64,000 bases of DNA from positions 1,474,351-1,538,350 of the forward strand of contig OZ287697.1 in NCBI GenBank assembly GCA_965649825.1, read 5' to 3'. Under the pieces are notes generated by a model, which worked only from the letters and a program-made list of their open reading frames with translations, searched no databases and was not told where the DNA came from. Below are positions 3,527-59,399 of the stretch, piece by piece. Position numbers and translations under genes: made by a program. Source of the DNA: Penicillus capitatus (lineage: Eukaryota > Plantae > Chlorophyta). Within the stretch, counting starts at the first letter, position 1, and each line of letters starts with the position of its first letter.

Positions 3527-3586
3527 AGTATCCGACGCTCCAGATCCGACGCTCCAGATCCGACGTTTATCTCAGATCCGATAAAT
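3527..3586 (+). repeat. Degenerate 14-bp tandem repeat (CAGATCCGACGCTC, ~4 units)
   Basis: Units start at 3527, 3541, 3555 and 3573. Confidence 0.7.
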
Positions 3587-28824: not shown

Positions 28825-30300
28825 AACAGTGCATCTACATCTGGAGGTGACGTTTACGTCGAAGACTCCACGCTCACCGTTCAGAAGTGTCAGTTCTCCG
28901 ATGGATCTGCAAAGTCCGGTGGAGGAATCTTCTCAGTTTCTTCAACTGTCTCTATCCGGAAGACTGTCGCATCCAATCTGGTTGCGGGTCAGTTTGGTGG
29001 ATTCTGTTCTGGTGGAAATTCCGAGATACAGTTGAAAGGCTGTGTATTCTCAGATAACAGAGCTGACGAAGGAGGTGTGATCCATTGCGGACCCAATTGC
29101 AGATTCTCAGACACTGGATCGAAGTACTCCCACAACTCAGCTGACTCTGGTGGCGCCGTTTACCTCGAGAGCAACCCTTCGGGCAGTATCAAAGATTGTC
29201 AGTTCGAGAAGAACAGTGCATCTTCATCTGGAGGTGACGTTTACGTCGAAGACTCCACGCTCACCGTTCAGAAGTGTCAGTTCGCCGATGGATCTGCAGA
29301 GCACGGTGGAGGAATCTTCTCAGCTTCTTCAACTGTCTCTATTGAAGACAGCTCCGCATCCGACTTGTCTGCAGATCGACATGGTGGATTCTTCTCTGGT
29401 AGAATCTCCAACATATCCATGAAAGACTGCGTGTTCTCAAAAAACAGAGCTGATGAAGGAGGTGTGGTTCAATGTCATTCCAACTGCAGATTCTCGGACA
29501 CTGGATCGAAGTACTCCCGCAATTCGGCAGATTTCGGTGGCGCCATTAACCTCCGGGAAGACTCATCAGGCAGCATCGAAGATTGCCGGTTCAAGAAGAA
29601 CAGTGCATCTACATCTGGAGGTGATGTTTACGTCGAAGACTCCACGCTCTCCGTTCACAAGTGTAGCTTCGAGAATGGGTCTGCGAAGTATGGTGGTGGG
29701 ATCTTCTCATCGTCTGCTGAAATCTCCGTCGATGATACCTCGCATTACTTTAACAACTCAGCAAACTTTGGTGGTGCCATTTGCATTCTGAGCAACTCAT
29801 CCGGCAACATCACTGACTGCCAGTTTGACAAAAACAGTGCATCTACATCTGGCGGTGCTCTATACGTCGAAGATTCCGTTCTATCCGTTCATAAGTGCAA
29901 CTTTACCCATGGATCTGCAGAGCACGGTGGAGGAATCTACTCGCGCTCCTCGGACATCTCTGTCAAGGATGCTTCGCACTACTCCAGCAACACGGCCAAA
30001 TCTGGTGGTGCCGTTTTTCTCGAAGACAACTCGTCGGGCAACATTACTGATTGTCAATTTGACAAGAACACTGCATCCAGATCTGGTGGAGCTGTATATG
30101 TCCGAGGCTCTACGCTCTCCGTTAACAAGTGCACCTTTAAGGATGGATCTGCAGATTCCGGAGGAGCAATCAGTGCAATCTCTTCGGACATCTCTGAATC
30201 AGTCGTCAAGAGTAACAACATCAAGATCTCAAGGTGTGAGGCAGAGACCGATGGAGGTGCCATCATGTGCAGTAGTTCATCGAAGCTGCTTTGCAGTGGC
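28825..30300 (+). repeat. Intragenic tandem cassettes in G5: periods 387, 387, 234, 234 nt
   Basis: AACAGTGCATC/AACACTGCATC anchors at 28825, 29212, 29599, 29833 and 30067. Confidence 0.9.
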
Positions 30301-32433
30301 TGCACTCTAGTCGACAACAAAGCAATCCGTGGCGGGGCCATATCCTTTCAGTACAGTGACACTCGATCTATTTCCCTGCAGTTAGCCGACAGCACTCTCC
30401 GAAAAAACTCAGCCAAATATGGAGGTATTCATTACAAGACTGACAGAGAGAGTCACACTGTTGTTCTTTACGCAGGAGCGATTCAAATTGCCGCCGAAAC
30501 TGAGTCTGTATTGCAAAAGTGTGTGGCAGAATCTGATGAATGTGGAGTCGCGGCTGTGGTGGACACATCGATGACGGACAACAAAGCAAGATCGGCAGGC
30601 GGTGCTATCCATATTGACAAAGTTGCTGGTCTCCGACTGAGCTGCTCAGACGAATTGAAAGAACAGGGACTGCAATTCTACGCAGAGAAGCAGTGGATGT
30701 CCATGAAGCGCCTGACATCGATCGACGACATCTGCCCATCCTGGAAAAACAACACAGCTGAGAGATACGGACCAGATGTGGCAACCTCTGCATTCGATGT
30801 CCGAAAGGAGATCACTGATGAGGAGACAGATGTGTTAAGCTCAGTGAATGGGAATGATTACACCATACGGAACCACAAAAGCGGAAGGCCAATTCCCATG
30901 ATCATCTTAACAGCGGAGGATGAGCTCGGACAAGGCTCGGTCGTCGGGGAGAACAATGAGGAAATCGAAGCTGTGGTGTCCTCCCCAGATGGATTCTTCG
31001 TTGGAAGCGTCAAAGTGCCCCTAGAAGAACGCGTCACAAGCTTCAGCACCGTTGGGTTTGTACAGCCAGGCATTTACAGAATTGTGTTTGATTTCAAAGG
31101 GGCAAGCAGAGAAAACTTTGAGATCGCCGTGGAGGTGAAGCCATGTGAAATGGGCGAAGTTTCTTCCGGGAATAAAACATTCTGTGAAATCTGCAGCGTC
31201 ACCTCTTACAATTTTTCGCCGGAAGAGGACTTGTTATGCCACCCGTGTCCAGAGAACGGAGACTGCACAACGCAAGTCATCTTGCCAAACGAGGAATATT
31301 GGCACGCATCACCTTGCTCGAAGAACATCATCAAATGCCTGAGCTCAAACGCATGTCACAACGAGAAACGCGTTGAGAAACTGGAGGAACTGACACGATA
31401 TATTTCCACCTGTAACATTAGCAAGGAACGAATCGAAGATTACCAACAGGCACAGTGTGAAGAGGCGAGTTTGAGATTCTAATTTGCTCAGGTGTTGATG
31501 ATCTCTGTTGTGCATGCAGGGTTACACTGGTCCACTGTGTGGATCTTGTAACAGTTCATATGGCAGTTCTCCGTCTTCCAAGTGTCAGAAGTGTCGTGTG
31601 GAGATCGATAATGTTCTGGTGATCTGCGTCTCGGCAGTGATTCTCTTGTTTCTATCCGGCATTACAATGAAAGGAACATTGTACACGACAAACCGCCAAC
31701 GGATGATGGTTTCTGGTCACAGACGGATTTCCCGTGGCATTCAACTCTCAAATCTTTCGACGCGAAACCTGGCAGAATCTCCAAGAGCAGAGGATCCTCC
31801 TGTCCGATCGGACGAGGTTGAAGGGACAAACGCATCAACAGGAATGGCGCACGTGACTGAAGCGACCCTGGCAGAATGGAGAGTCACCGAGATGCTCAAG
31901 GTGCGACCATCGTGCACACGCCCCTTCCTAACAGGGACCGTTATTGCAGATAACGCTGAACTACATCCAAGTGACAGTACTGATTGCATCTCTAAACGTT
32001 GGATGGACATTTCTTGTTCTTAAAGTGGGAGAGATAGCAGGTCCTCAGCAGTCCGTGTCAACCATCGCCTCACCTCATCGCTGTGTGCTCTGTAGAGTTC
32101 TTCGGCGGGCTCGCAGCAGAGAGCGTCCGGAGCTCAGTTGTCTGTCTGAGCAAAGCAAACCAGTTCCTTCATCCGACCATCTGGGGCACGATCGTGAGCG
32201 TTTCTGTCGTTCCTGTTGCTGCATTTCTGTTGCTCGTTGTGTTCTGGACTGGAGTTGCACTCTTCTATCAGATCGAAAGGCGGCTGCGTTACATCGCGCA
32301 GAGATGTGTGCTTTCACTCATGGCACTCTGGTACATCACTTCCGTCCCGGTGATCAAGACAACACTCAGCGTTTTTATCTGCGTTGGTGTGTACAACGTT
32401 CTGGATGGAACGCAGAACGATGAAAAGATCATA

Positions 32434-32511
32434 GACACGACAAAGGAGGAAGAGATCAGTTACTGGGCAGTTGACACGACAAAGGAGGAAGAGATCAGTT
32501 ACTGGGCAGTT
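32434..32511 (+). repeat. Perfect 39-bp in-frame tandem duplication (DTTKEEEISYWAV x2)
   Basis: Units 32434-32472 and 32473-32511, followed by GACACGA again. Single copy in G2. Confidence 0.95.
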
Positions 32512-35500
32512 GACACGAAACTGAAGTGCTTTGAGGGCCAACATCTGATCCTGGTGACCTAGATTCTGCCGTTCGTGAGCATCGTCTACGTCGGACTCCT
32601 CATCGTCTTTATCTCCATCCTCACATCGCCCAAGGAGCTGCGCGATCATCCACATAGCTGGGTCTATCAGACCACTGGATTTCTGTACCGTGGCTACGGG
32701 TCCGGATGGCGGCGCTACTGGGAGGCGGTCATCGTGCTGAGGAAAGCGATTCTTGCTTTTCTGGTTTTCTGCGCCCACCGTTTTAACAGCCTTGTTTTCA
32801 TCACGTCCCTTGCTATCTTCATCATACTTGTGATGGGACTGCAGATGGTGGCGATGCCCTACAGAGAGAAGTTTGACGCCTTGAACAGAATAGACTTGTT
32901 ATCCCTTTTCGTCTCACTCCTGACGATCATGTTCGCCATCATGCTGGAGAGTGGGGGTCTCGGCGAAGAGTGGTATGGAATGACGCTCTCGATCATCTGT
33001 GCCGTGCTCAATATCTCTACCTTTCTCGTTCTTCTCTGTTTTCTTTTCAACTACTGGGTTAAGAGCATCAAGCTCTCCATGAGCGAATGCGGGACGCACA
33101 TTGACGCAGATGCCGGAACACTAAGAATCCTGAAGATCTGGCTGGGATACATGTTTCAGTCCGTGGCCCCTTATGTGAGATTCGACAGGCATCACGATCA
33201 GAAGAGTCTTTTTTCCGATGTGTAAACATTTTTTGGCCAACAGCATCTTTTTATATTCAAGCCAGCAACATAAGGGTATTCTAATCTGTTGTTGTCGGCG
33301 ACATCCCAGTTGTTTGTTGTTCTCTTTTGCGTGCGTGCGTGCGTGCATGTTCAGAGTAACGAACAATCTGTGGTGGTGTGGGCAGAAGCGTAATGCTATT
33401 GAGCATTGACTGTGGGTGACGGCTCCCTCCTTGATTCTTTATTCCAGATGAACAATCGTGTTATCAACTGTCGATGTAACGAGGGAGCTTTCTTGATGTG
33501 ACTGTGAACAGACGCGCGAGAATACTAAATGAGAAGCGCGAGCATTAAGTTGGAAGTTCTCCGACATACAACTCCGATTCCTCCGCACGTCACCTCACAT
33601 TCTATGCTTCTCTGTGCCGATACACGTAAGGACGACTGAAGACGGGAGAGACGTCTTCAGACAACAGTGCGCCGTCATTCTTCCATGAATGGTTTCCATC
33701 GTCGCGTTGACGTCACTCAGTGTCTCTCCCGCAGCAGCACCCTGACAGCGGCATACATGACTGGAAGGCAAACACAGATGCTGATAGTGGAGATGCGAGC
33801 AATCAATCCTGCCGTCCTCCGCTAGCTGATTCCTCGGCTGAGGCGACGAAAGTGCGTCTCTCATACTCCTGCTGAAGCATGTGGTGCGTTGTCTAAAAGA
33901 CGAGAGATCTGGATGTTGTGACACAGTAACGCACACGGTGATTGTCGTCATCGTCTCTGATGCAATCAAGAACGATCGACGCGTCATTCTCCGTCTGACT
34001 TGTGAAGATGGAGCGTCACCCTTCAATGCCTGTTGGATTATATGGCCTTTCGATTGGAAGGCCATCCTTCAATCCATCCTCTTCAGCGCCATCGCTTCGA
34101 GTAGAGTGCTTCGCAGAGCGAATTCGTGGAGCAACGATGGAAACGGCCTTCACTTTAAAGGATCGAGCATCGCGTTTGTCGAGGATTCTTCGTCTGCAGG
34201 GAAAAATGGAGTCTTAAGAAGAAGGATTCCGATCGCGACTGTTGGATATTTAGCCTCTTACCTGTCCTGGAGGAAAGAACCCGAGCATTCTCTTGTGTTG
34301 AATGAAGACTGTTTGTTCTCAGCTAACACACCTATCCTCTCTGACTTTGTTATCAACAGCTCTGTGCGATAGAGAAATCTGCGCTTGATACAAGACAAAA
34401 CGCGATCTGTCTAATAATGAGCAGGCCGCTGTTGAGGTGTTGGAAAGCTAAGGAGTGCCAACCGGGCGACAGAAGCAGATGCGTTTGGTCATATCGTTTT
34501 CGTTCGGACAAGAATTCCTCAGTCAATGGATTGGAGTCCTCGTTCGCTCTCTGCATCTTTCCGCGGAATCGAATCCCCCTACTGGCTTCGGCATTGTTCT
34601 GCTTATCGGTGTTTGCTGAGCTATACCCGTGTGCCGGTTGATCTCATTGAATTCTGTTCAATGTTACACTCCATTCCTGCAGATGGTGTTGTCTGCTAGC
34701 ATTTACATGACGCAAACCTTGTGGAAAGGAGATGTCATTATGAGAGCAAGGTGTGTTTGGTACTGCCCACCTCGCCGTTCATGACGCTCGCAACGTCTGC
34801 CGAAGACAGATACTTGAATGGGTTTCTTAGTTAGTAGAGCAAGAGAAGGAGTGTCTCCAAGATTCTTGCCGACTTAGGCATTCGATTTGGCACAACTGCA
34901 AGTGCCGTTTGCTGTTGTCGATCGCGACATCTATCGCGACAGAAGAGAGATAACAATGATGACGATAACGCTGCCGTTTACTATGCACCGTCGAGGATTT
35001 CGTCCAGTAATATGTCACGTCATGAAGTGAAAGTGCGCAGACAGAAATACTCGTGACGAGCAGCGAGTGATAGATGAGACAAGTACTAACGAAAGGAACC
35101 TTGTGGAATGAATGGCTGCCGTAGTCGGTTCGTCTCTGATCGCGATTGGCCGGCGGGATCGACGGGTTCTATACTGGAGAGGGCGTATGTGTCGCCGTGT
35201 TCGGCTCAGGGAAGCCCGCAAGATCCGTCGCGTCATCAGACCGTCGCTTCTATGGTCTGCACGTTTCGCTGCGACAGTCATCACGTTGATCGATGCGGAA
35301 AGCCTGAAGCGAAGAACCACAGTGAAAGTTTTGTGGTATACAGCGCGAGAGATTTAACTGTCACCACTACTAGAGACACCACGTCTCTTGCGATTCTAAT
35401 TCGTTCCGATCCTTGTCTCTCTGGTGCGTCCGCATCGCTCGTCCTGCCCACTTGTGCAATATCATCGTGCACACGCCGACGGAGACTTCTTTGTCTTCGC

Positions 35501-35546
35501 GAAGCCATTCCTGCGAGACTTTCTATTCCGTCGGGGCGACGGGCAG

Positions 35547-38500
35547 ATGCGGCGCTCGTTTATTCTACTCATGTGCTGCGCTTCATGCAGCTTGTCTGTT
35601 TTGTCCACTGCTGGCGCAAAGCTATCCGCAAACGACCAGCAGTTTCCCGACTCCATTCATAAAGGTAGATGTTGTTCCAGCACTCTGATATGCGAGCGAG
35701 CGTTCGCCGGCAGGCGCGCGGACAACTGTCGGACGCCGTCCACTGCCAGCCGTAAACAAGGATGTCTTCACGGAGACTCCTATCGAATCATCAATGGTGA
35801 GCCGGTATAGCCAGTGCCGAATCCTCGGCATTGTACTCTTGCGCGAAGGTCCGCAACGGAGAACGCATTCTGCTTCAATCCGAACAACCCAACGCTGCCA
35901 AGGAACCTGGTCAGATATTTCTCTCTCGATTATCTTTCCAGAAGATTCACTGAGTGGCGTGTTTAGAACGTGAATGTTCTCTGCGACGCGTCGACATCCG
36001 CCGTTACTTGGACGTGAGCTCGAGAACGTGGTCAGTGGACGACGACGCGATTGATGAAATCGACAGCGACGTGCAGGCGCTCGTCAACTGTACGAAGGAA
36101 GGAGACGTTCTGCTGTTCAACGCGACGAAGAGAATCCGACCCTCCACTCCCGTTGTCCTCCCGTGGCCGCTGACCCTGAGTGCATTCGTCGAGCAGCCTG
36201 ATGGTCCCGAGGAAGGCGTGTTCCCGACGGCAGTTAAGAGAGCGACGTTCACGTGTCCCCACAAGAACGAAGGCGTCTTTCTCGTCCGGTAGGTCCTCTC
36301 GATGCAAAGAACATCGTTGACGGTGTGTGCCTTGCAGAACCGGAGGTTCGATTCTCGCCAACCTCGAGTTCAGAGACTGCCTTTTCGGCGAATCGGGAAA
36401 GAAAAAAGCGTTGATCGAAGTGGAGGGGTGTGCCTCGGCACCGGCAGACCGTATTCTGCTTCTGCACCACGTGTCCTTCAAGGAGAACCGCCTCGTCGAT
36501 GCCGCGGGCGTCTGGGTCCACTCGACATCTTGTCTGGCACTCGACATGCGAAACGTCGAGTTCTCGGACAATCAGTGCTCGAGCAGCGGCTGCGGCGCGA
36601 TCCTGTCGTCAAACAACAGAATCGAAGACTTCACGGCCAGGCGGAATCGCCTGACGGAAGAGCACGACCGTCAGCCATCCGTTCTGAATGCTCCGGCTGC
36701 ATCGAGGACAGTGGCGACCGACATCAGGGCTGTTCGCAACGATCTCGCTGCGATGCATGTCGTGGAAGGATCGCTCTCCCTGACGAATTCAACCTGTTCG
36801 TATAACTCAGTGGAGGCGTTTGATGACGAAGAGCCCTTCGGTCCTTGCATCCATCTCGTCCGAACGACGGCTACGATCCAGAACTCTCGTTTCGAGGGAA
36901 ATCAAGGATACTGGGGAGGGTCCGTTTCCATGCAGTCCTCCAACGTCTCTCTTGAAGACTCAGACTTCCGCAACGGCAGAGCCGAGAAGGGAGGTGTCCT
37001 GTTCGCCGAGACTGGCAGCGTGGTCTTTATTGAGAGATGTAGCTTCGTGGAGAACGAGGCAAGCAAACACGGTGGTGTGGCCTTCATTGTTTCGTCGTCA
37101 GTGTCACTCGTCGATTCAAATATGAGTGGCAACTCGGCTGCGGATGTCGGTGGAAGTCTTCGCCTCACAGACTCGACGTTGCAGATCGAAGCATGTCATT
37201 TTCGGAATGGAAGCGCATCTGAAGGCGGGTTTATTCGCATGCAGAAAGCATCAGCGAATATCATCGACTCAACATTTGTCGAAGGCTTTGCAGAACACGG
37301 AGGCTGTGTTGCTTTAGAAGAGCGAAGCCAGCTGGTGTCTCGTGACCTCATCTTCAGATCCAGTTCCGCACACTACGACGGAGGGGTTGTTTATGCTTTG
37401 CAGAATAGCTCTCTGTCCTTCATCAATGCGACCTTCGTATCAAATACGGCAAGGGAGGGCGGTCACTGCATCGCCGTTGATACGTCTCGTGTTTTTGTGA
37501 GACAATCTCTCGTGGCCAACAACACGGGGGCTGGAAAAGGAGCCTTCCTTTACGCTGCAAATCGTAGCAGTGCAGATATCGATGATAGCACATTCGTTCA
37601 CAACGCCGCTCGTTTTGGCGGCGTGATCTATCTAGACATGAGCTCAGTGGGAGTACATGGAAGTATCTTTTCGGGGAACGCCGCATCTCAAGGAGGCGGA
37701 AGCATTTACATGCACACCGATAGCAATCTGTCCATCCATCTGTGTGGATTCGATAATGGAACTGCTGGTGGGAACGGAGGATTTGTGTTGTCATACAACA
37801 GTGAAGCCAGAATCTCGAGATCTCACTTCACCAATGCTTCTGGCGTCTTTGGTGGATGCTTGGCTCTTTCTGATGGAACGAACATGACCGTAGAGAACAG
37901 CACCTTTTCCTCCTGCCGAGTACAGGGTGATGGAGGCGCAATTCATGTCGCTAACTCAACACTGGCAGTTGAGAACATCATCCTGGCAAACAATACAAGT
38001 GAAGATAGTCGGGATGGTGCTGGTGGCGTCTCCTGTCTGTCGAAGTGCCGAATGAGCGCAGTTAACTCGTCCTTTGAGGCGAACTCTGGAATATACGGAG
38101 GCGCCATGTCTATTGCCTACGAGAGCTTGGCCACAGTCGCTGGGTGTCGTTTTTCGGGAAACACAGCTCGACACAGTGCTGCAGCAGTATTCGTTGATTC
38201 CTCACACGTCAGTTTGATTCATTGCGTTTTTACAAACGGGAGTGCGATGTATGGAGGCGCTTTTTCCATCAGCCAAGGTTCGCGGGTGAATCTCAGTGAT
38301 TCCTCCATCTCTTATGGGATGAGTGGCCAAAGTGGCGGCGCAATCACTATTAGCACCGAAAGTGTTCTGCTGATGCGCAATGTCTCCGTGGAGAACAACA
38401 CATCGCTGGATAGCGGAGGCGCTATCTCTGCTGCAGATTCCGCAATGCATCTACAAAACTCAAGCTTCCTCGGAAACCAGGCAATGGCATTCGGTGGCGG

Positions 38501-41500
38501 CGTTAATATGCTCAGTCGATCCGAACTCATCGGAGATGCATTGATCTTTGATGCAAATTCAGTACGTAACGGCAGTGGAGCAAGCATTTTCAGTGAAGAG
38601 GCCTACAGAGTTCAGATCTCCAACTCTCGATTCAGTAACGGCATTGCCGACAACGGTGGCGGCGCACTTCTGCGCTTTGTTGAGGCGGCCAGTGTACTTG
38701 TCAACTGCTCCTTCGAAGGCAATTCAGCTGTATCGTTTGGAGGCGCATGTGTCGTGGCGAATTCCGCCGTAAGGTTTAAGAACTGCAGCATGGATGGAAA
38801 CAAAGCTAGAGAGTTTGGAGGCAGCTTGGTCGTCGCAAATTCCACTGTCGATCTTGGCAACTGTCACTTCAGTCGTAACAGCTGGACAGCATCCGGAGGT
38901 TTCATATGGGCGGGCGTGAACAGTGAGATCCGAGGGTACAATGTCTCTATGGTGGAAGCATCTTCACAGATGGGAGGAGCAGTGTGGTTTCATGATTCTG
39001 TGATCCAGCTAGAAGACGCTCACTTCTCAAGCTGTCACGCAAACATATCCGGCGGCGTCATCGCCGGATCGGAGAACGCCTCTCTTTTGTGCAACAACTG
39101 CATCTTTGAGAATAACACAGCTAGGAATTGGGGAGGTGCTGTATTCTTTTATAACGTAACGTCGCACCCCGTCTCTGTCCAGATCAACGGATCCACTTTC
39201 AAAAACAACACAGCCACACTTGGAGGTGAAACCAATCACTGCAGCATCTATCCACTGGCAATGGAGTTGTGCCTAGGTGCCACAGCCTTTTTCAGAGATT
39301 CTGAGCAAACGAACTGCACGATCCAGGATGACAACTGTTCTTTCCTGGTCGTGACAGATTCTGTCTTCTCTGAGAACGAAGCCGTGTCTGCTGGCGGGGC
39401 TGTCTTTGCGTCAGACATCGACAGCATTCGAATGAGCTGTTCTGCCTATGAGAGATGGCCAAAGAGGGCAGAATTCTACGACATAGAAGAACTGATGACC
39501 TTGGATGCAATAAGATCCGTGGAAGATATCTGTCAGTCTTGGAAGGGCAACCAGGCTGGTGTATACGCGGACGATGTTGGGTCATCCGGTGCTGGAGTTC
39601 GCACAACTGTCGTCCCTGACGGCTTACACGAAGCCGTGGAGGAAGTGTCGGGAAATAGATATGTCGTCGAAGGGTACTCGAGTGGAGAGCCTCTTCCTGT
39701 TATCCAGTTGGAAGTCGTCGACGGATTGGGTCAGGGACCAGCCATCAGTGCAAGCGGTCGAGTAATCGAAGCTGTGATGACCTTTCCAGTCGGCTTTTTC
39801 TCCGGATCCGTCAACATCAAGATGAATGATGGCGTCGGGAACGTCTCTGGAGTGGTTGGTTTTGGAAGGAAGGGTGTGTACGAATGTATGATCGACTTTA
39901 GCGAAGAACTGATCGAGTCGCTTGCGGTGGAAGTGCACGTCAGGGAGTGCAGACTTGGCGAAGTGGCCGCCGCCGACGGAACTTTCTGTGAGCCATGCAC
40001 CTCTGACACATACAACCTCATGCCAGGCAACGGGACCGGATGTCGGCCTTGCCCGGAGAACGGAAACTGCACGACTCAAGTCATCCTGCCAGCAAAGGGA
40101 TACTGGCACAAGACTCCGTGTTCCGAGCACATCCAAGAGTGCCTCTCTTCCGAGGCGTGCAGCTCCGAAAAGAGAGAAGACAAATTGACTGCAGCAACGA
40201 GGAACATCAGCAGCTGCGAATTCGATGAGGAGTTTAAACAGAACTACACGGAAGCTCAGTGCAGAGAGGTGATCTCTGGGTGCTATGGTGTGTTGTGCTT
40301 AAGGAGTGGCGTCACAGGGACACGAGGGCCCTCTGTGTGGATCCTGCAAAGCCTCCCATGGGAAGTCTCACTCTTTATTGTGTGAGGAGTGCTTCTCTGG
40401 ATTCGGCAACTATGCCTTGATCTTCGTGTCGTTCTTGGTGCTCATGGTACTGTCGTACATCACGGTGAGAAGCAACAAGATCTCGACTCCGAAGTTGAAG
40501 AGAATATCCATTAAATCCATTCGCCAGCTTCAGTCCCTGCCAAGCGGATCATCCTTAGTCCGCGTTAATGAGGCAGAACCTCAAGATGCAGAAGTGGCGA
40601 AGTGGAAGGCTGCAGAGCTGTTTAAGGTTGGTCAGAGAAAGCTTCTCTGTCGAAATGATACCTCTCTGTATGTAGATCATGGTGAACTTTCTGCAAGTGA
40701 CCGCCATTGCCGTGGCCATCAACGTCAAGTGGACTCTGGTACTGGTCGCGCTGTTCGAAGGCGCAGGTGAGAGAAGAGCGTTTTTTAAGAATAACGCCTT
40801 CACAGGTTGGTTGTCCTGCAGAGTTCATCAGCGGCATCACCTCGGAGACGGTGAACCGATCAGCGGACTGCATCGTCCCCGTCGATGCCTCGATGGATCG
40901 TTCGATTGCCAGCATCATCATCGACGTTTGTCTTCCCCTGGGCGTCATCTGCGTGTTCATCATGATCTGGATGGCCATCAAGGTCAAGCGAGGAGAGACG
41001 TGGTCCTGTCTGCTCAAGAAGATCATCCTGACGGTCATCGCCGTTCTGTACACGAGCTACATCTCCCTCACCAAGACACTCGTCAGCATTCTGGACTGCG
41101 TGGAGGTCCACGATTCTGTCGACTTTGAAATCGACGTCACATCAGACTACTGGGCAACAGACACCAAGATCGAATGCTACAAGGGACCCCACGCCTTGTT
41201 AGCCTTTATTTTGGGATGGCCTTTCTTGATCCTTTTCTCCTTCGGGTTTCCGTTGATCACTGCCTGCCTCATCGTCACAAACGTCGAAGAGGACTACAAA
41301 TGTGGATGGATCTACGAGACCTGCGGGTTCCTGTACCGTTCCTATAAGAGGAGTTTCGTGTTCTGGGAATCTGTGATTATGTTCAGAAAGGCTGTTCTGG
41401 CAGTGATCGTCGTTTTCTCTTATCCTCTGGGTGCCAATCTGCAGCAAGTTCTTGCTGTACTCCTCTTCGTATTCGTTCTCTACCTTCAGATGATCTGCTG

Positions 41501-41861
41501 TCCTTATCGTCCCGAGTTCGATAGCTTGAATAAGATGGAGAGTGCATCGATCTTCGTTTCGGCAATGACCTTTGCCTCGAGCATGTTCTTCGCAGACGAG
41601 AAAGTATCTTCCTCTGTCCGCACGTTGATCACTGTCGGTATTATACTGGCGAACGTGACACTTTTGTTGTTCTTCCTTTTCTTTTTGGTGATCTTTGCCG
41701 TCAACTACCTGAAAATTCGTCTTGATGAAGAGGGAGTGCCTTACAACCCAGATGGCGGTGCTCACCACATCCTGTGGGTCTATTTTTACCATTACCTGTT
41801 TGAACGCATGAAGAAGGCTATTCACAAACTGTTCTTCGGCGCACCGCCGGCATCTGTCTAA
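35547..41861 (+). CDS. G6: Pmp-repeat beta-helix multi-pass receptor-like protein, 1,967 aa (close paralog of G3)
   Basis: Introns 35665-35713, 35797-35848, 35910-35966, 36289-36337, 39226-39276, 40269-40317, 40627-40675 and 40767-40821 give 1,968 codons with no internal stop seen. Confidence 0.88.
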
Positions 41862-44800
41862 GAATCGGACGTCTGTGATCTCTCATTTTTCCTTTCTGCC
41901 GCGATGTTCTAAACTGTTGATCACTTCCTATTTGATTTTAACCTGTCTGTTAGAACTGCTGAGTAAGAGATTGTGTGAGAATAGACAACTCGCAGCCGTT
42001 GCCACGACGAGCGCTAAACCTCAGTCCAAGAGTGATTTCGACAGCTCAGGTATTGCATGAGTAGAATACCGTAAACTCGTTTTTCTGCTATCTCACTCGT
42101 GCAGGTAATCAGGTGACAGGCTTCAGCTTAAACAGATTGCTGCGATGGTTTGACGACATGATCAATTGGATGACCTCATCTTCGTATGGCCTGTATGTGG
42201 AATGATAACCCAAATGCAAGAATCGGTGAGAACGCCCACAGGCAAAAGACAAGGAAACAATGAATGGCATTCCTGAAGAGGAGTGCTCGCTACGTAGGCG
42301 CCTACAATGCTCCATAGTTCTTCCGTCTTAGCATGCGCCGTCACTTTGTTGATTGAGACTGCTCCGAACATCTGCGTTCGAGTTTGTCTGTTCCGACGGG
42401 GTGGAGGTCGTCTTACGTGGTGGGACTGGCTGCATCGGGAAAGAACTCAGCAAAGAATGATCGCGCTGTGTCGCTGGGGTCAGTCAAGAGGCTCCCTTTT
42501 CAGGAGAGTAAGATCGTCCAGTTACACGGATCTTCGAGTGCCGATTCCGTCTAAGAGAGGTTCAGAACACAATCCGGTTCTTGAGTTTCAGCTTGGGCCG
42601 TCTTCCTCTCTTCTGTTCTTTATCCCATAAACGAGTATCGAGGTTCAACCAGGCTCTAAAAGGTAGGCGCCCTTGACACCAGACATGGTCTTTTGCGGTT
42701 AGTGACTTGATCTACTAACCGAGATACCGTCAAAACCAAGGCGCTCAAAGCAAGGACGAATCGCAGCTGCTTGCAAGCCATTTAGCTTTGTACAGCTCTG
42801 CCTCGAGATGCTAAGTGAGAAGGTCCCACTCGATCTTCTTCCATTGGCGTTTAGCTTATGTCGAGATAGGACTCCACAAAGGCCGATCTCAAAGGACATC
42901 CGTTCGTGGTCGGTGGACGGAATTTCAACTTCATGCTTCTGTCAGCTGCATTCTAGAGGTAAGTGTCTTAGATAGCGAGCGACACAGCGACCTACGGTAA
43001 GGGTCGGTCGTGGACACGTTAGGAGGGAAGCAGGAATACAGAGCTCTCGTTCTTCAACAAACTCAGTTCAGAATATCATCAGAGCGCGACGTGCGTCTCA
43101 TCTGCCCCCCATCCGTCGTACCATCGATCTTACACCTGCAACAAAGAGACTTTTTTTGAGCGGAAAGTGTACGGTGCATGATGTGTCTCGCCGTCTTCTC
43201 AGATCATTGCGACCTGATATCTTCTCGACGATAGTAACAAGTAGGATGTGAACATGCCAGTAGTACTTTATGTGTGCTTTGTCAAAAACATTCTTCTTTT
43301 AACTCGGACAGGAAATATCGGTTTCAATGATCATCTTTATAACGCAGATATGTGTTCTTAGTCTTTTTTATGTTTCTAGACGGAGAGGCTTTAGCAGACT
43401 TTCCATCCAGGATAGGCGACAACACTTCGAATGCAGGTGGAAGTCGCGAAGAGGAAGGAGTCCGTTCGTCGCGTCTGACAAGGGGCCGAAAAACCTGCGC
43501 ATTGCCTCGGCGGAAGAATCCGCGCAAACGCCAGACTTTGCCCTAACGTGGCTTGTGACGCGACCGATGGGCGACCAAAAGATCATTTCTCAGCTAGCTA
43601 GCCGTACGGCAGAAAGATCGATACGGCGACTGTTTCCACCTTCTGCGCTGGACTCACTCTACAAGGTCTGGCAGCCAGAACGTTGACGGAGATGAAAACT
43701 ACTCGATGTTCTGTCGAGCAAGTAGAGAGTACAGAAGAGCAGATCCTACAGCTGACCCGTCGTACGAGATTGAGTCTGTCCACAGCGTATTCCAGTGACG
43801 GAGCTTGTTGTCTGTTTTGCTTTGAAACTCCTGGATTCTGCGATTCGGAGAGCGTCGTTTCGCAGTGTGTATCTGGCAGATGCGTTAACCTATCTCCCTT
43901 CTGGTGGCCAACAGGATCCAGCAGCCAGTAGACAGTCACCGTTCGATAACATGGGATTCAAGTGCTCCATTGACAAACGATGATCTGGCACATTGCTAAT
44001 ACAGACCAGTCTCCTTTTTCAGCGTGTTAAAGAGCAGTCAGACAAGTCTTTCTGTTTATGGTCAACCTGCACGCATCCGTTGACTCCATTCCGGGCAAGT
44101 CTCGTGTGTCATGTCTCGCTTCTATGTGTCCTTGACCCCCTCTCCTGCTCAGGAAGAAGTGAACCACACTTGGCCAGTGCAGTGACATTCATCAACCTCG
44201 TCGTTGCATCCCTCGGTTACGTGGCGAGTCACTCATCCGCCCTGTCATGGTGTCGAAGAGAATTCCTTGCTTGTCTGATTGAGAATGGATATGGACTTTC
44301 TTAGCTGCGAGACGATGAGGCACCAGCACAGCAGACATGAAATAATCTGTGCAGATGTCGAATCACAATCTGTTTTCTGACAATGCGATGCAAATGCCGA
44401 TGCAGTATCAACGGCATACGGCAGACAGAACGTAGTAAACAAACCATCCCACATTTGCAAACCATCCGGAGTTCTCTGTCTCTGTAGAGTGTTTACCAGA
44501 TCACATACAACCTGCCTCCATAGTCTCGTCTCAGCAACCTCTTTGTTCTCCGCGACGCTACGGATTCGCACTGGATGGAGCTCCGAAGTGTGAGAGTTTC
44601 ATACGATGTCACACTTGAGATGAATGGTCGTTGATTGCGCCCTCTCTGTCAAACATCGTCCACCGTACTGTCAGAAAAAGCGGCGATTCTGTGTCCTGCG
44701 AAAGTGTGACGAGTGGACGAGCTGCTTCGGTGTTGGCACTCTAGGCCTGCAGCCTTAGGCCATATTCGCCAACGTTGCGTCAGCATGACAACACGAAGCC

Positions 44801-45215
44801 GCAATTGGCAACAGTGGAGCCAACGGTTGCTCTTCAAACGCGGCATCAAGACGCGGCTGGTGGACAGCGGTGTTCTTGCTCGGACAGGTCGTAGTTGGTG
44901 CGACTGTTCGTTGCATGTCAGCATTGGAGGCCTTGCTTGATCTGAAAAGACATCCACAGTGGGCTGCGCGACGAATAGACGCTCGAAGAAGCACGTCGAT
45001 TTTGTCCGTATGCCCAACGGGAGAATAAGGCGCGTGCACGAAGCATGCTCTCGGACACGTGGTCGTTCGCTGCACCAGCTGCACCGTAGCTGCAGTAGAA
45101 GCATTTCTCGCCTCAGCTTGCAGCGATTTCCATGCAGCTGGGCTCTTCCCGACTACAAAAGCCGCACAGTTTGCAAGCGTCTGTTGAAGTTTTCGTTCAG
45201 TAGTCCGACAAAAAA

Positions 45216-48200
45216 ATGCGACGCCGTTTACTTGGTTTGTTGTTGACGTGCGTGATGTTCCGCACAACCGCGAGCGCATTATTAACCTCTTCAAAGCCCG
45301 GTCCACGTCGAGCTCTTGCTGCTTCGACTGCCAAAGGTGCCTCGACCTCGTTTATCTCCTGCGAAATCTCGGCCTCGAATCCATCGTCACTTTCAGAAAA
45401 AATGACATCTGTGCCGCCTCATGCAACGAAGACTGCCGACTTCCCGACGAAACAGGAAGATGAAGCGACGAGTTCGTCTCTGGCGTCCCAAACGAGCATG
45501 GCTTTGGAGAAAGATCGTCCATCTCTTGATTTGGGAGGTCGAAGTGCGAGCCGTTCCCTGCTACAAGATGATGGCCTCAACGACGAAGCTCCACTGAGTG
45601 AGATCCTTGCTGTATCTGAGAACTCTTTCTTGACGCCAGTGCTCTTGGTCTTTACAGGCCTTCCTTGTTCCCTGAACAAACGAATTCTTAAAGAACATCT
45701 GAACGAGACGACGAGAACGTGGCGTATCAACCGTTCACTTCTTGACGACGTCGAGAATGACATCCAAGTCATTGTCAACTGTACGAAGCCAGGCGACGTC
45801 CTCACCTTCAGTCCGAAGCGAAGAATCCGGCCGTCTTCGCGCATCGTCATACCATGGCCACTGACGCTGACAGCCCCGGTGAACAGTTCTAAGCTCGAGG
45901 AAGGCGTGTTCCCTCGTTCCGACTCAAAAGCGACCTTCACCTGTCCGAACAGAAGAGAGGGCGTCTACTTGGTGAAGTGAGATTCGAATTCCCGAATCCG
46001 CCGTTGTCTGACGTGGATCTCGTTTTCAGGTCGACGGGTGTCCTTTTCGCCAATCTGATGTTCGAGGACTGCTCGTTCGAATCTGGCAGTTCTGGGTCCA
46101 TCGTGGAAGTTGAAAACTGTACTTCCAGTCGCATCAAAGACAACATTCAGCTCCATCATGTCAGTTTCGTGAATAACACGCTGATCAACAGCACGGCACT
46201 CGCAATGCAGTCACCATCTTGCTTTGAGCTGGTATTGATCGACTTCGTCTTCGAGAATAACACATGTGACGGCAGTTGCGGCGTGATTCTTTCCAGAAGG
46301 GATCGATTACGTGATATCGTCATTCGGCGCAACAAGCCGCATGACTCTGCGAATCTTAACACGACGGTGTTCTATGCGTCTGCTGGATCTGAGACGTCAG
46401 TTGATCTCATGAACAGTTCAGGGAACAGATGTTCAAGCATTACACTTAAGAACGGATCTCTAGACATGACACGTGCTACATTCGCACAGAATTCGATCGC
46501 ACATGGCCGGAATGATACGAGCATCGCATCATTGCGCTTGACGTCAGCGTCGGTGTCGTTCAAAAAGTGTCGGTTTCAACAGAACTCAGCTCACATCGGA
46601 GGTGCCATTACCATATCAAGATCGAATGTCACTTTCATAGATAGCATCTTTGAATCAAATGCTGCTGCTGTACACGGTGGTGTCATGGTGTTTCAAGATA
46701 ACAGCACTGTCTGGATTCAATCCTGCAACTTCTCCTTGAACGAAGCTCTCGAGTCTGGTGGCGTGTTGCTGGGGATTAAGTCTCGGTTAATCGTCACTAA
46801 CTCCTTTCTGGAAAAGAACTCTGCGAACGACACTGGTGGGTGTATTCTTCTGGATCACTCAAGTGATCTGACGATGTCATCCACTGTGATGAAGAACAAT
46901 GAAGCTACGTTTGGTGGTGCCATTGCGATCAAAGGGAACACATCGGGGCGTGTGATGAATTCGTCCTTCCACATGAACAATGCATCCACATCTGGCGGCG
47001 CTGCTTACGTCGATGATTCCGTACTCTCAGTTCAGAAGTGCAGCTTCACCAATGGATCTGCGAAATTTGGTGGTGGAATCTACTCAACCTCTTCCAAAAT
47101 CTCCGTCAATGATACTTCGCATTACTTCCACAACTTTGCAGGTTCCGGTGGAGCCATTTTTATGGAGAGTTACTCATCAGGCATCGTCACCGAAGGCCAG
47201 TTTGATAAAAACAATGCAACCACATTTGGCGGCGCTATATTCGTCCAAGATTCCGTCCTCTCAGTTCAGAAGTGCAGCTTCACCAACGGATCTGCGAAAT
47301 ATGGCGGCGGAATCTACGCATTCTCTTCATATATCTCCGTCAATGATACTTCGCATTACTCCCACAACTCCGCGGACTTTGGTGGAGCCATTTTTATGGA
47401 GGCCAACTCTTCAGACATTATCAAGAATTGTCAATTTGATAAAAATAGTGCATCCACATCTGGCGGTGCTATTTACGTCCAAGATTCCGTCCTCTCAGTT
47501 CAGAAGTGTGACTTTACGAACGGATCTGCAGAGAGCGGAGGAGGAATCGTCACATTCTTTTCAAATGTCTCTGTCGGGGAAACCTCGGCGTCTGGCCTGT
47601 TTGCAGTTCAGCGTGGCGGATTTGTCAATGGAATTACTTCTGAGGTTTACATGAGCAACTGCTCATTCTCGGACAACAGAGCTCGTGTTAGCGGAGGAGT
47701 GATACAATGCGATGATGGTTGCCGTTTCACAGATACGAGATCGAAATACTCTGGCAATGCAGCAGAGTATGGTGGCGCTATTGTTCTTACAAGCAATTCA
47801 TTTGGCAGTATCACCAAATGTCAGTTTGGCGAGAACGAAGTCAAAAGCGCTGGCGGCGCCGTCTACATCCTAGAGGCTGCGCTCTCAGTTCAGGAGTGCA
47901 ACTTCACCGACGGATCTGCAATACTCGGTGGGGCAATCTACTCAATGTCTTCAGACTTCTCCATCCAGGATACATCCGCATCTAACATGTCTGCAGCCAA
48001 CTTTGGTGGATTCTTAGTTGGTATAACTTCTCAGATACGCATGAAGAACTGCTTATTCTCAGACAACGTGGCTGGTATCGGAGGAGGTGTGCTCCATTGT
48101 GAAGCTAATTGCAGTTTCTCGGATACGGGATCGAAATACTCTGGCAATAGAGCAAACGATGGTGGCGCCATTAGCTTTTTAAGCAATTCAGTTGGCAACA

Positions 48201-51200
48201 TCACCAAGTGTCAGTTTGATAAGAACGAAGCGGAAAACTATGGCGGCTCCGTCTACATCCTAGAGGCTGCGCTCTCAGTTCAGGAGTGCAACTTCACCGA
48301 TGGATCTGCAATGCACGGTGGGGCAATCTACTCAACCTCCGCAAAAATCCCCGTCGACGATACTTCGCATTACTTGCACAACTCAGCGGATTTTGGTGGC
48401 GCCATTTTTATGGAGCGCAACTCCTGGGGCATCTTCACCGAAGGTCAATTTAACAAGAACAATGCGACCGCAGCTGGCGGCGCTGTATATGTCATAGACT
48501 CCGTGCTTTCGTTTCAGAAGTGCAACTTTGCCAATGGATCTGCGGGATACGGAGGCGGAATCTGCTCGTATTTTTCGGACATCTCTATCTTGGAGACTAA
48601 CGCCTTTGACCACTCTGCCAATGAGCAAGGCGGTTTTATCTCATCATGGAATAGAAGCACAGTCACTGTGACAAGAAGCTCCATGATCAAAGGCAGATCG
48701 CGGCAAGGAGGTGCTGTTTTCCTCGCCAAATCTGTCTTCAAGGGTGACGATATCCGCATCGCACAGTGTGAGGCAGAGAGTGATGGTGGTGCCATCATGG
48801 GCAATGATTCATCGAGGTTGCTCTGCAGTGGCTGCACTCTAGTCGACAACAAAGCAATCCGCGGTGGAGCCATATTTCTGGTCTACAATGACACTCGATC
48901 CATTTCCCTGCAACTCGATGACAGCACTCTGGTCGACAATTTAGCTGAAAATGGAGGTACTCACGATAAGGCCAACGGTTAAAGGGGGTTTAGGCTGTTG
49001 TTCTTTACGCAGGAGCGATCCAAATCGCCGCCGAAACGGAGTCCATGCTGCACGACTGTCGGACAGAACCCGACAAATGTGGAGTCGCGGCTGTGGCGGA
49101 CACGTCGATGATGGACAACAAAGCAAGATCGGCAGGTGGTGCCGTCTTCATCGACACGGTTGCTGGTCTACGACTGAGCTGCTCAGACGAATCGAAAGAT
49201 CACAGACTGCAATTCTACGCAAAGAAGCAGTGGATGTCCATGAAGCGCCTGACATCCATTGACGACATCTGTCCGTCCTGGAAAAACAACACAGCTGAGA
49301 GATACGGACGGGATGTGGCAACCTCTGCATTCGGTATCCGAAAGGAGATCTCTGATGAAAAGACAGGAGTGCTGAGTCCAGTGAATGCAGTAAATCACAC
49401 CATACACAACCACAGAAGCGGAGATCCAATTCCTATGATTAGCTTAGCACTCGTGGATGAGCTCGGACAAGGCTCCGCTGTCGGGGAGAACAATGAAGAC
49501 ATCAAGGCTGTGATGTCCTCACCCGATGGATTCTTCGCTGGAAGTGTTATCAAGCCTCTGGGCATCGAAGGCGCGAATCTCAGTGCCATTGGCTTCGCGC
49601 AGCCTGGAGTGTACAAAGTTCAGATTGAGTTTGAAGGAGCAGACTTGGAGAGCTTCGAGATCACTGTGGAGGTGAAGCCGTGTGAAATGGGTGAAGTGTC
49701 TTACGGAAATGGGACGTTCTGTGAATCTTGCAACGTTGCCTCCTACAGTTTTTCTCCGGAAGAGGATCTAGAATGTCATCCGTGTCCAGAGAATGGAGAC
49801 TGCAGCAGTCAAGTCATCCTGCCAAACAAGGGGTACTGGCATCGAACTCCGTGCTCGGAGCGTGTCCAGAGATGTCTCACAGCAGAAGCGTGTGCGAGTG
49901 ACAATCGTGCAGATACATTACGAGAACGCACGCAAGATGTACAGACGTGTCAATTTGACGATCAGTATGTACAGAACTACACAGAGGCGCAGTGCAGAGA
50001 GGTGAGCATCGTGTTTGTCCGCAGATTTCATCAAGCGTCGTTGGTTCTCAGGGGCATGAAGGGCCACTATGTGGATCCTGTAAGGAATCCTATGGAAAAA
50101 CAAACTCTCATCTCTGCGAGAAGTGTCGATCGGATGCTGCTGATGTCGTCTTAGTCGTTCTGTCATTTCTTGTCCTATTGGGCTTATCCAGCATCGCCAT
50201 CAGGAGCAACCTCATCTCTATGTCTCCATCGCAGCAGGGACAGCAAATACAAACTACTCCTCAGTTTTCGCCTGCCTCCACCAGCACCCACACAGTTCCG
50301 GCCGAGATGAGAATAGAATTGGCAGTCATCCAAGAGATCAGGGAAGAAGGCTCAACTTCTGATCACAATCAAGAAGCTGGTACTGGTCAGTCTTCTAAAG
50401 ATGCAGAGCTCTCCAAATGGATGGCAATTGAGCTCTTAAAGGTCGCACCTTTCTCTACTGTATGTTGTGTCCATTCACAATGACTGTTCTGCAGATTACA
50501 GTGAACTTTCTGCAGGTCACAGCCATAGCTGTGGCAATCGATGCTCAGTGGACATTCGCATTAATCGCACTCTTCCAAACTGCAGGTGACTAAAAGATCA
50601 CTCTGTTCGACAGTTTGTGGACGTGTGTTGTGTGCTGCAGAGTTCGTCAGTGCCATCACATCAGAGGCCGTCAATCAATCTGTCGACTGCCTCATCCCAA
50701 CAGGAGCTTCTCTGCAGCGATCAGTCGCCAGTACACTGGTAGATGCAACGCAGCCGATTGCATGCATCTTCGTTTTCATCGTTTTCTGGCTGGCAATCAA
50801 GATAAGCCGCAGAGGGTCATGGACGTATCTGTTGAGAAAGTGTATCCTTAGCGCACTCGTCGTCTTCTACATCAGCTACATCTCCATCACCAAGACGCTC
50901 ATCGACATCCTAAACTGCGTCGAAGTCCATGATTCAGCGATGCCTGGGATCGACGAGACAACGAACTACTGGGCAGTGGACACCAGCGTTGAGTGCTACG
51001 AGGGATCGCATGCCGCGTTGGCTCATCTGTTGGCATGGCCATTCCTCGTCATCTTCACTGTTGGGTTTCCACTCTCTGTCGCATTCCTGGTTGTCAAGAA
51101 GGTTACAGGAGACTACAAGGATGGCTGGATCTACGAAGTCAGCGGCTTCGTCTATCGATCCTACAGCAAACGATACATCTTCTGGGAGTCCGTGATCATG

Positions 51201-51689
51201 TTCAGAAAAGCCATTCTTGCAGTTGTCGTCGTTTTCTCTTATGAACTCGGATTCGACATTCAAGCAGTTCTGGCCTCTTTCGTCCTGATCATGGCATTGT
51301 ACTTTCAGACCAAATGCCGTCCCTATCGTGAAGAGTTTGATTCTCTCAATGACGTAGAGAGTCTCTCCATCTTGGTCTCTTCCTCTACGTTCATTTGCAG
51401 CATCTTCTTTGGGGTTGATCACGTCTCTGATGAGGTTCGTGTGCTCATCAGCGTTCTCTTGTGCTTTGCAAACATTCTTTTCTTTCTCTACCTCCTCACT
51501 CTTTCTGCCAGGTTTGCTGCCGAGTACCTCAAGACTGTACTGGCTAGAGAAGGAATCTCGTCGACAGATGACACGTTTCGAATTCTCGCAACCTATTTGA
51601 TTGATTACCTGTTTATGCATGTTAAGAACGTTCTGATGAGATGGGGCAAATCTGCCAGATCTCGTCGCTATCGTCGTTCTGAGCTTTGA
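45216..51689 (+). CDS. G7: Pmp-repeat beta-helix multi-pass receptor-like protein, 2,048 aa (ectodomain close to G5)
   Basis: Signal peptide MRRRLLGLLLTCVMFRTTASA. Introns 45598-45657, 45977-46029, 48957-49012, 50002-50051, 50442-50494 and 50586-50640 give 2,049 codons. About 150 bp upstream of the ATG is shared with G5. Confidence 0.88.
46976..48690 (+). repeat. Intragenic tandem cassettes in G7: periods 234, 234, 390, 390, 234 nt
   Basis: Anchors (Asn codon of FxxN) at 46976, 47210, 47444, 47834, 48224 and 48458. Confidence 0.9.
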
Positions 51690-59100: not shown

Positions 59101-59399
59101 AAGTCCTCAGTCCATCGTGGCGCAACCGCTGTCTCGTAGTGCTCACCCGAATCTGAACTGTCAGCGTCGTCCTGCAGCAGGCGTTTCCCGAGACTCTGTT
59201 TTCCGATAGCGAATTCGCCGTCCGTCGGCCGAGACGCCGCCATGCGCGAAGAATCGTCGAACCCTTCAATGCCGTTTCCGACCCTCTCCGACACGGGTCG
59301 GCTACGGTCCGAACGTATGGTCGTTTCAGCTGTGGCGCATAGCGAGGGAAGAATTGGCAGGAGGCAGAAAACGGAGAGGAATCGCAGGAGAGTGGCCAT
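53150..59399 (-). CDS. G8: Pmp-repeat beta-helix multi-pass receptor-like protein, 1,974 aa, convergent with G7
   Basis: Signal peptide MATLLRFLSVFCLLPILPSLCATA. Introns 59082-59146, 58710-58762, 55899-55947, 54862-54906, 54377-54435 and 54232-54285 give 1,975 codons. Family motifs are intact. Confidence 0.88.

Follow-up and report, generated by a model that had tools for sequence, protein, structure and literature searches.

Whole-turn tandem repeats in the beta-helix ectodomains of two clustered membrane protein genes of a green alga vary between paralogs and between homologous contigs

Clustered families of surface proteins with in-frame tandem repeats in their ectodomains are well described in fungi: in the yeast FLO and Candida ALS genes, recombination varies the number of repeats among alleles and paralogs and alters the exposed length of the protein. 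Polymorphic repeat regions also occur in pertactin, a bacterial autotransporter adhesin. In lampreys and hagfish, the germline holds the variable lymphocyte receptor (VLR) genes only in incomplete form, and hundreds of donor cassettes on their flanks serve to complete them somatically. Here we analyze a 64,000-nucleotide stretch of the green alga Penicillus capitatus (contig OZ287697.1), referred to below as the window, in which two paralogous genes, G5 and G7, encode predicted membrane proteins with a beta-helical ectodomain partly built from tandem DNA repeats. An earlier note, made from the sequence alone, had described these repeats as two cassette types, a three-rung S and a five-rung L, arranged in different orders in sister receptors by unequal recombination, and had compared them to the assembly of leucine-rich repeat (LRR) cassettes. 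We find that the arrays probably result from ordinary germline, mostly intragenic repeat recombination and conversion in a clustered family of beta-helix surface proteins, and not from programmed assembly.

The window lies in the contig ctg340394_13x_l (576,620 bp) of the European Nucleotide Archive metagenome assembly ERZ25074695. It was compared with a homologous contig from the same sample, ctg340204_12x_l (313,748 bp; coverage 12x against 13x), and with other loci of the family. Repeat finding and a motif scan place the copy starts 387, 387, 234 and 234 nt apart in G5 and 234, 234, 390, 390 and 234 nt apart in G7, exactly the L-L-S-S and S-S-L-L-S orders first reported; Tandem Repeats Finder scores the arrays at 1172, 565 and 763. 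Both arrays lie inside uninterrupted open reading frames (ORFs), 27796–31482 in G5 and 45977–48982 in G7, and their units translate in frame into 129, 129, 78 and 78 amino acids in G5 and 78, 78, 130, 130 and 78 in G7. Every unit consists of whole rungs of 25–27 aa. In a 26-aa register the arrays resolve into five rung types, S being A-B-C (25+26+27 aa) and L being A-B'-D-E-C (129–130 aa), in agreement with the unit lengths and rung structure given in the earlier note. The two genes and their units are listed below; pS is the proportion of synonymous differences and TM stands for transmembrane.

27081–33225, + strand: gene G5, with a signal-peptide/low-complexity exon, the beta-helix ORF 27796–31482, a Cys-rich stalk and a divergent multi-pass TM domain.
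28822–29208, + strand: G5 unit 1, L, 387 nt, 129 aa, A-B'-D-E-C; 91% identical in nucleotides to the single L unit of G5 on the homologous contig.
29209–29595, + strand: G5 unit 2, L, 387 nt; first 129 nt without synonymous difference from unit 1, the rest at pS 0.43–0.46; mosaic, p = 0.0005.
29596–29829, + strand: G5 unit 3, S, 234 nt, 78 aa, A-B-C; mosaic, with a 5' part like the G5 L units and a 3' part in the S clade.
29830–30063, + strand: G5 unit 4, S, 234 nt; positional counterpart of unit 4 on the homologous contig (90% in nucleotides).
30064–30225, + strand: G5 terminal partial unit, A and a truncated B; falls short of the G7 tail by 47 aa and of the tail on the homologous contig by one rung.
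45216–51689, + strand: gene G7, with exon 1 at 45216–45976, an intron at 45977–46029, the beta-helix exon to 48956, an intron at 48957–49012, then the Cys-rich stalk, a TM1 exon and the TM domain to 51689.
46973–47206, + strand: G7 unit 1, S, from repeat finding, translation and motif scan.
47207–47440, + strand: G7 unit 2, S, from repeat finding, translation and motif scan.
47441–47830, + strand: G7 unit 3, L, 390 nt, 130 aa.
47831–48220, + strand: G7 unit 4, L, 390 nt; holds the 50-mer 47861–47910, with an exact match in unit 5.
48221–48454, + strand: G7 unit 5, S, mosaic; about 110 nt at the 5' end like unit 4 (50-mer at 48251–48300), 3' part in the S clade.
48455–48688, + strand: G7 terminal unit, A-B and one divergent rung, followed by cap rungs.

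The shorter end of the G5 array, noted before as a lack of about 47 aa of the last unit, is seen equally in the interval between the conserved motifs 'SDIS' and 'CEAE(S/T)DGG', which measures 13 aa in G5 and 60 aa in G7.

The history of single units was followed in trees of 23 units from six genes, built separately for the first 129 nt and for the last 105 nt. A tree of individual cassettes had been suggested in the earlier note; the trees of the two segments are incongruent, and mosaic units are found. In the 5' tree, unit 5 of G7 (S) pairs with unit 4 (L) and unit 3 of G5 (S) with the L units of G5, whereas in the 3' tree both fall inside the S clade. Unit 5 of G7 shares 90% identity with the L unit at 47831 in rung A and only 55% in the last 102 nt, where it is 78–79% identical to S units. 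This is the unit previously recognized as a chimera, here placed at 48221. The 50-mer quoted in support of it occurs exactly twice, at 47861–47910 and 48251–48300, with zero occurrences expected by chance, and the breakpoint lies at nt 104–117 of the unit. Maximum chi-square tests gave a permutation p of 0.0005 in every parent/mosaic triplet tested (five unit triplets), identifying as mosaics unit 5 of G7, units 3 and 2 of G5 and unit 6 of the G7 counterpart on the homologous contig.

Synonymous differences change abruptly along single pairs of units. Between the two L units of G5, pS is 0.00 in the 5' segment, 0.46 in the middle and 0.43 in the 3' segment; between units 4 and 5 of G7 it rises from 0.12 at the 5' end to 0.65 at the 3' end. 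Such jumps inside a single pair point to conversion, not selection. In the G7 pair about 52 identical nucleotides lie within about 90 nt of high similarity, and the 5' side, too, has only about 70% identity. The pattern suggests gene conversion over short tracts and not a single crossover. Together with the incongruent trees and the significant mosaics, the jumps support the proposal that recombination preserves both the reading frame and the rung register.

Comparison of rung sequences shows that S is not an independent module but a derivative of L with two rungs deleted. At its consensus junction, rung B of S passes from the first ∼22 residues of B' into the final residues of E, and S equals L minus 51–52 aa, exactly two rungs. 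A short direct repeat marks the junction, with '..EDTS..' on the B' side and '..SDTGS..' on the E side. In the tree of the last 105 nt all eight S units form one clade with 91% bootstrap, which fits a single S-producing deletion followed by spread.

Other members of the family carry repeats in further registers. A four-rung unit with a fused C/A rung occurs once in K3 and twice in K6, and a distinct four-rung unit with fused D/E occurs twice in P0246. K11 carries three almost identical copies of one 26-aa rung close to the C-terminal cap (IGNNASRGGAIMGTRSSKLLCSGCTL), as a 78-nt tandem repeat (L011, 6637–6960) that sits elsewhere in the helix than the other cassette arrays, and K12 contains a nine-rung, 235-aa duplication that includes pre-array rungs. 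With repeats of one, four and nine rungs in paralogs, whole-rung recombination occurs in many registers, and the 'two cassette types' of the earlier note, one of them a deletion derivative of the other, are a local sample of a continuum.

We next consider between which copies sequence has been exchanged. The longest exact matches measure 52–169 nt within arrays and 15 nt between the arrays of G5 and G7, and homogenization is intragenic, confined to each array. The proposed recombination at shared rungs is supported, and recent exchange between G5 and G7 is rejected. Nor are the two genes true sisters, as had been assumed: they pair as closest relatives only as long as the comparison stays inside the window. 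Judged by the helix before the array, the sister of G5 is K4, a paralog that lies ∼86 kb from it on the same contig (87–89% nucleotide identity, 100% bootstrap), and G7 is 77–79% identical to every sampled relative.

An alternative is that the order differences between G5 and G7 arose mainly by ectopic exchange between paralogs, through intergenic conversion or crossing-over, and not by events within each array. S units occur, among the family genes examined, only in G5 (on both contigs) and in G7 of the window, although these genes are not closest relatives, and the S units of G7 are nested in the S diversity of G5 (88% bootstrap). This hints at a transfer of S between the two neighbors, or at losses of S elsewhere. 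Any such transfer would be old, as the S units of G5 and G7 differ by 26–33%, as much as or more than the genes themselves. On a larger scale, the block 48703–60256, comprising the 3' half of G7 and the gene G8, is 88.7% identical over 11.6 kb to the 3' half of K4 and its G8-like neighbor (L008/L004), and one edge of it lies exactly where the array of G7 ends on its 3' side; the arrays thus act also as breakpoints for larger replacements. Replacement of whole 3' halves is indicated as well by the TM domain of G5, described below. However, the two arrays share no identical tract longer than 15 nt, and the recent tracts are all intragenic. As the main source of the order differences we regard ectopic exchange as unlikely, though it deserves serious consideration.

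We favor ordinary germline recombination within arrays, which probably proceeds as follows. The family of G5 and G7 is large, lineage-specific and clustered in tandem, and its members are predicted surface membrane proteins. Each begins with a signal peptide, continues with a long, right-handed and parallel beta-helix whose PMP-type rungs measure ∼26 aa and with a Cys-rich stalk, and ends in a ∼9-pass domain related to the fungal and algal TRP-like proteins. One subfamily encodes the part of the helix nearest the membrane in in-frame tandem DNA repeats with the five-rung L as the basic unit, and a single two-rung deletion between 'EDTS' and 'SDTGS' would have produced the three-rung S. As the GGxI / FxxN(S)A core is common to all rungs, misaligned recombination in the germline, together with gene conversion of short tracts inside an array, could add units, remove them or overwrite parts of them, always by whole rungs. 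Paralogs and homologous chromosome copies would then come to differ in the length of the helix and in the order of its exposed residues, and at a larger scale whole 3' gene halves would also be replaced. The arrangement resembles FLO and ALS in its in-frame tandem repeats in the extracellular part, which vary in number and order between close copies and carry recombination footprints. It differs in the nature of the repeats: those of FLO and ALS form Ser/Thr-rich stalks, while those of G5 and G7 add whole turns to a folded beta-helix, so that surface and length change together.

The VLR system is similar in that a solenoid protein exchanges its repeating structural elements as cassettes while the fold is kept. 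Under a programmed or somatic assembly of this kind, the receptor gene would receive combinatorial copies of cassettes and so yield a repertoire within one individual. Only the modular, frame- and register-keeping structure and the mosaic units speak for such a process. In G5 and G7 the frames of the array and ectodomain are complete in a germline-type assembly (an in-frame stop of G5 lies further downstream, in the TM domain), and the variation is inherited. A BLASTN search of the 64-kb window with all 23 units returned matches only at 28822–30202 and 46973–48597, inside the two arrays, and banks of donor cassettes in the window are rejected. Moreover, the divergence between units (pS 0.1–0.6) is that of old, inherited copies, and the allele-like pair K4/K4alt has the same L-L-L array on both contigs. 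Somatic assembly is highly improbable on these grounds, and the analogy with VLR cassettes fails on the complete frames and the lack of a donor bank in the window.

The homologous contig is collinear with the window contig over more than 100 kb, four anchor points having a constant coordinate sum to within ∼5 kb, and intergenic DNA is 94–98% identical between the two. The arrays at the loci shared by both contigs are as follows.

G5 locus: L-L-S-S on the window contig; L-S-S-S and one extra tail rung on the homologous contig.
G7 locus: S-S-L-L-S on the window contig; six L units in one ORF of 1,563 aa on the homologous contig.
K4 locus: L-L-L on the window contig; L-L-L on the homologous contig (K4alt).

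Cassette order is therefore polymorphic at syntenic loci and not fixed, against the identical order that the earlier note had named as a refutation, and the helix ranges from ∼14 to 30 cassette rungs across one locus pair. P0247, on the contig of 576,620 bp, and P0250, on a contig of 39,966 bp, have ∼99% identical proteins except for exactly one L unit of 130 aa (two against one), a clean copy-number polymorphism. K4 on the window contig has a frameshift at the start of its array, giving two overlapping ORFs (L004, 7493–10007); its counterpart (L008, 16851–19322) is a single open frame.

The arrays might in principle have been collapsed or mis-joined in a metagenome assembly of 12–13x. Coverage is indeed modest, and a related 46.6-kb 'circle' of family genes looks repeat-induced. 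Against this, all arrays keep an open frame over 1.2–2.5 kb, units within an array differ by 4–30% and should be resolvable by long accurate reads, and the breakpoints from contig to contig fall at whole-unit boundaries. We give an assembly artefact very little credence.

Divergence between the contigs is concentrated in the two genes, in blocks to which no strand is assigned.

29150–32878: G5 divergence block; array rearranged, C-terminal ectodomain (C-ecto, the Cys-rich stalk region after the array) 82–93% identical, TM region without homology; flanks 96–99% identical upstream and 97% downstream.
44800–51104: G7 divergence block; 73–83% identical to the homologous contig in the 5' part, array unalignable, 81–92% in the 3' part; upstream flank 94–98%.

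In G7, a sliding window shows identity dropping from ∼95% to 73–83% from ∼400 nt upstream of the start codon and recovering only to 81–92% in the 3' half. Synonymous divergence (dS) between the contigs is 0.60 in the helix upstream of the array (N-part) and 0.47 in the C-ecto, compared with 0.10 in the conserved 5' part of G5. In G5 the break starts inside the array, and the C-ecto has a dS of 0.44. The TM region of G5 (31319–32843) has no homology to its counterpart on the homologous contig (L005, 10764–12717), which encodes a G7-like TM domain. Identity resumes at 32843, inside the last TM ORF, and the homologous contig retains a relic of the window-type TM 3' end, a pattern that points to replacement of the 3' half of G5 in one haplotype.

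Several observations weigh against a history of simple recombination within arrays. The homologous contig is either the other haplotype or a very close sister strain co-occurring in the sample; related lineages co-occur at coverages of 12–13x, 41x and 344x. The divergence of G7 from its positional counterpart (dS ∼0.5–0.6) is as deep as that between paralogs, and repeat slippage alone does not account for it: either an unsampled paralog must have replaced the gene, or allelic lineages must have persisted for a long time. Finally, G5 on the window contig has an in-frame TAG at 32560–32562, inside a conserved TM helix, and may be truncated or a young pseudogene. G7 appears intact.

Long-lived allelic lineages would be expected if G5 and G7 were recognition loci (self/non-self, gamete or microbe) under long-term balancing or diversifying selection, with the array as the determinant of specificity. 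The pattern in G7 agrees with this, its identity between the contigs being 73–92% with the promoter region included and its flanks 94–98%, at the dS values given above. So does a pN/pS of ∼1.0 (pN, the proportion of nonsynonymous differences) in the recently homogenized 5' segments of six unit pairs, where the changes avoid the GG and hydrophobic core positions; the non-repeat parts of G5 and G7 have an overall dN/dS (nonsynonymous to synonymous divergence) of 0.24–0.42 between contigs. That overall ratio itself argues against diversifying selection, and replacement by unsampled paralogs explains the same pattern. Only two chromosome copies are compared, K4 and G6 are ordinary (95–98% identical), and G5 may be a pseudogene. 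Balancing selection on recognition loci thus appears improbable, and germline recombination within arrays, accompanied by larger replacements, is the explanation we prefer.

The fold expected from the rung pattern is recovered in structural models. AlphaFold2, applied to 46103–47440 (the pre-array helix with units 1 and 2 of G7) with 115 homologs, gave a predicted local distance difference test (pLDDT) of 95.4 and a predicted template modelling score (pTM) of 0.93. The model is a right-handed parallel beta-helix with three short strands per ∼26 residues, unbroken through both S units. The 115-sequence alignment was needed: a single-sequence prediction of the whole G7 array reached a pLDDT of only 39. 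A Foldseek search of the Protein Data Bank (PDB) recovered almost only right-handed parallel beta-helices, namely pertactin (1dab; TM-score 0.53, probability 1.0), phage tailspikes, PL6 alginate lyases, alginate epimerases and Ag43; sequence searches of the PDB with the TM domain and with the helix returned nothing useful. On this model, exchanges that keep the helix register are structurally reasonable. Beta-helices usually rise by ∼4.8 Å per rung, from which the two versions of G7 would differ in length by ∼50 Å.

The autotransporter adhesins (pertactin, Ag43, TibA, UpaB), surface-exposed beta-helices and the best structural neighbors, are anchored in the membrane in another way and show no sequence relation to G5 and G7 beyond the fold. 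A parallel in sequence is found in the chlamydial Pmp and 'outer membrane repeat' proteins of bacteria and archaea (PF02415), in which, as here, repeats of GGA(I/L/V) and FxxN form the rungs of a beta-helix. G5 and G7 score 78 and 62.1 bits against Chlam_PMP (PF02415; cut-off 20.6), the window paralogs G3 and G8 also pass the NosD threshold, and hundreds of prokaryotic homologs were found. By score and by fold, G5 and G7 thus count among the PMP-repeat right-handed beta-helix proteins (PF02415/PF13229). However, the chlamydial Pmps are type V autotransporters with a C-terminal beta-barrel, while G5 and G7 are eukaryotic genes interrupted by introns of the spliceosomal type, and their proteins combine a signal peptide and a Cys-rich stalk with an alpha-helical multi-pass domain. 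A Pfam search found no autotransporter domain in G5 or G7, and the C-terminus consists of ∼9 hydrophobic helices (∼9-pass in the gene model of G7).

This C-terminal domain links the family to other algae. An exhaustive HMMER search with the TM domain of G7 matched 2,783 representative proteins at E ≤ 1e-3, the best full-length annotated matches being from Caulerpa lentillifera (EukProt EP00210, e.g. P004162) and Bryopsis sp. KO-2023 (GMH41758.1). These proteins have the same order of parts, an N-terminal Beta_helix/Chlam_PMP ectodomain of 1,000–3,000 aa followed by the C-terminal multi-pass domain, and their TM domains are homologous to that of G7 at E values of 1e-86 to 7e-31 but only 32–46% identical. 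Judged by the nearest annotated homologs (33–46% identity), the DNA most likely comes from a siphonous green alga of the Bryopsidales or a relative. The GC content and diploidy reported in 10.1101/2020.07.21.211367, like the co-occurrence of related lineages, would fit a source similar to Ostreobium. K-mer-indexed protein searches with the C-ecto and TM domains returned metagenome proteins only. In Pfam, the assembled TM region of G7 matched no family significantly, and both G5 and G7 stayed below the threshold of the TRP-like family PF06011 (28.5 bits). The Bryopsis protein P0226, which matches the TM domain of G7 at E = 7e-31, reaches 32.8 bits, and a TM fragment of a window paralog at 4003–5100 gives a weak match of 16.5 bits. 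The fungal TRP-like/Flc proteins of PF06011 likewise have a multi-pass C-terminal domain and carry a small ML-like N-terminal domain in place of the beta-helix. Our search of the literature on PMP/beta-helix families in protists and Bryopsidales found no publication on this family, its function or its cassette arrays.

Recombining tandem repeats in genes for surface proteins are well known. In G5 and G7, however, each repeat consists of complete turns of a beta-helix, and the proteins are eukaryotic, combine a PMP-type helix with a TRP-like membrane domain and come from a large, uncharacterized family. More interesting still are the strong gene-limited divergence and the cassette polymorphism between homologous chromosome copies. 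The most likely role is that of a polymorphic surface sensor or adhesin, and we hypothesize that the array could offer a combinatorial binding surface, changes of which might affect ligand binding. Should the family sense signals from the cell wall, from wounds or from partners in giant single-celled algae, determinants of specificity would naturally be sought at these loci; if it does not, they still give a clear worked example of solenoid proteins growing and shrinking in whole-turn steps. A much bolder view, which we consider a long shot, is that G5 and G7 are hyper-polymorphic recognition receptors of a coenocytic green alga. The array would set the specificity for ligands or partners (self/non-self, gametes, resident microbes), the TRP-like domain would transduce the signal, and balancing selection would preserve old allelic lineages, which recombination in whole-rung steps would reshuffle. 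If true, LRR-based recognition systems would have a germline counterpart built on a beta-helix.

The remainder of the window (GC ∼51%) is filled by the same family: ∼8 paralogous genes, seven on the + strand and one on the - strand. Each gene has a signal peptide with a Ser/Ala/Thr-rich stretch, a Chlam_PMP-repeat ORF, a C-ecto with the Cys-rich stalk and a hydrophobic domain, in this order. Exons were mapped by tblastn, and introns of ∼53–56 nt were assigned from GT..AG boundaries at which splicing restores protein continuity (e.g. 45977–46029 and 48957–49012 in G7); they mark the source as a eukaryote. In the 12 loci fetched, all neighboring ORFs are family members and no housekeeping gene was found. 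An Rfam search of the window gave no match, and the Blastocystis-type TGTTTGTT signal occurs there only at chance level.

Some further features of these loci were noted. The TM domain of G5 contains a perfect 39-nt (13-aa) tandem duplication at 32434–32518, with the in-frame TAG ∼40 nt downstream. G6 is 84% identical to G2. In a related lineage (L007; sample ERZ26696514, 96x contig, 78–84% nucleotide identity), an ortholog of G3 is directly followed by one G7-like gene, K7, with about two L units, and then by G8. G5 and G6 are absent from this locus, which suggests that the G5-G6 pair was inserted or duplicated in the lineage of the window. A 46,591-bp contig reported as circular (L010, ctg296184_87.61x_c) carries several family genes; a real circle is less probable here than an artefact of assembly caused by repeats. 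Orphan fragments of the TM domain lie between genes at 4000–5019 and 14385–15179, the latter 84.5% identical in nucleotides to the TM domain of G7; they are probably debris of ectopic recombination. The first, partial gene of the window contains a perfect 14-nt tandem repeat of 2.6 copies at 3530–3565.

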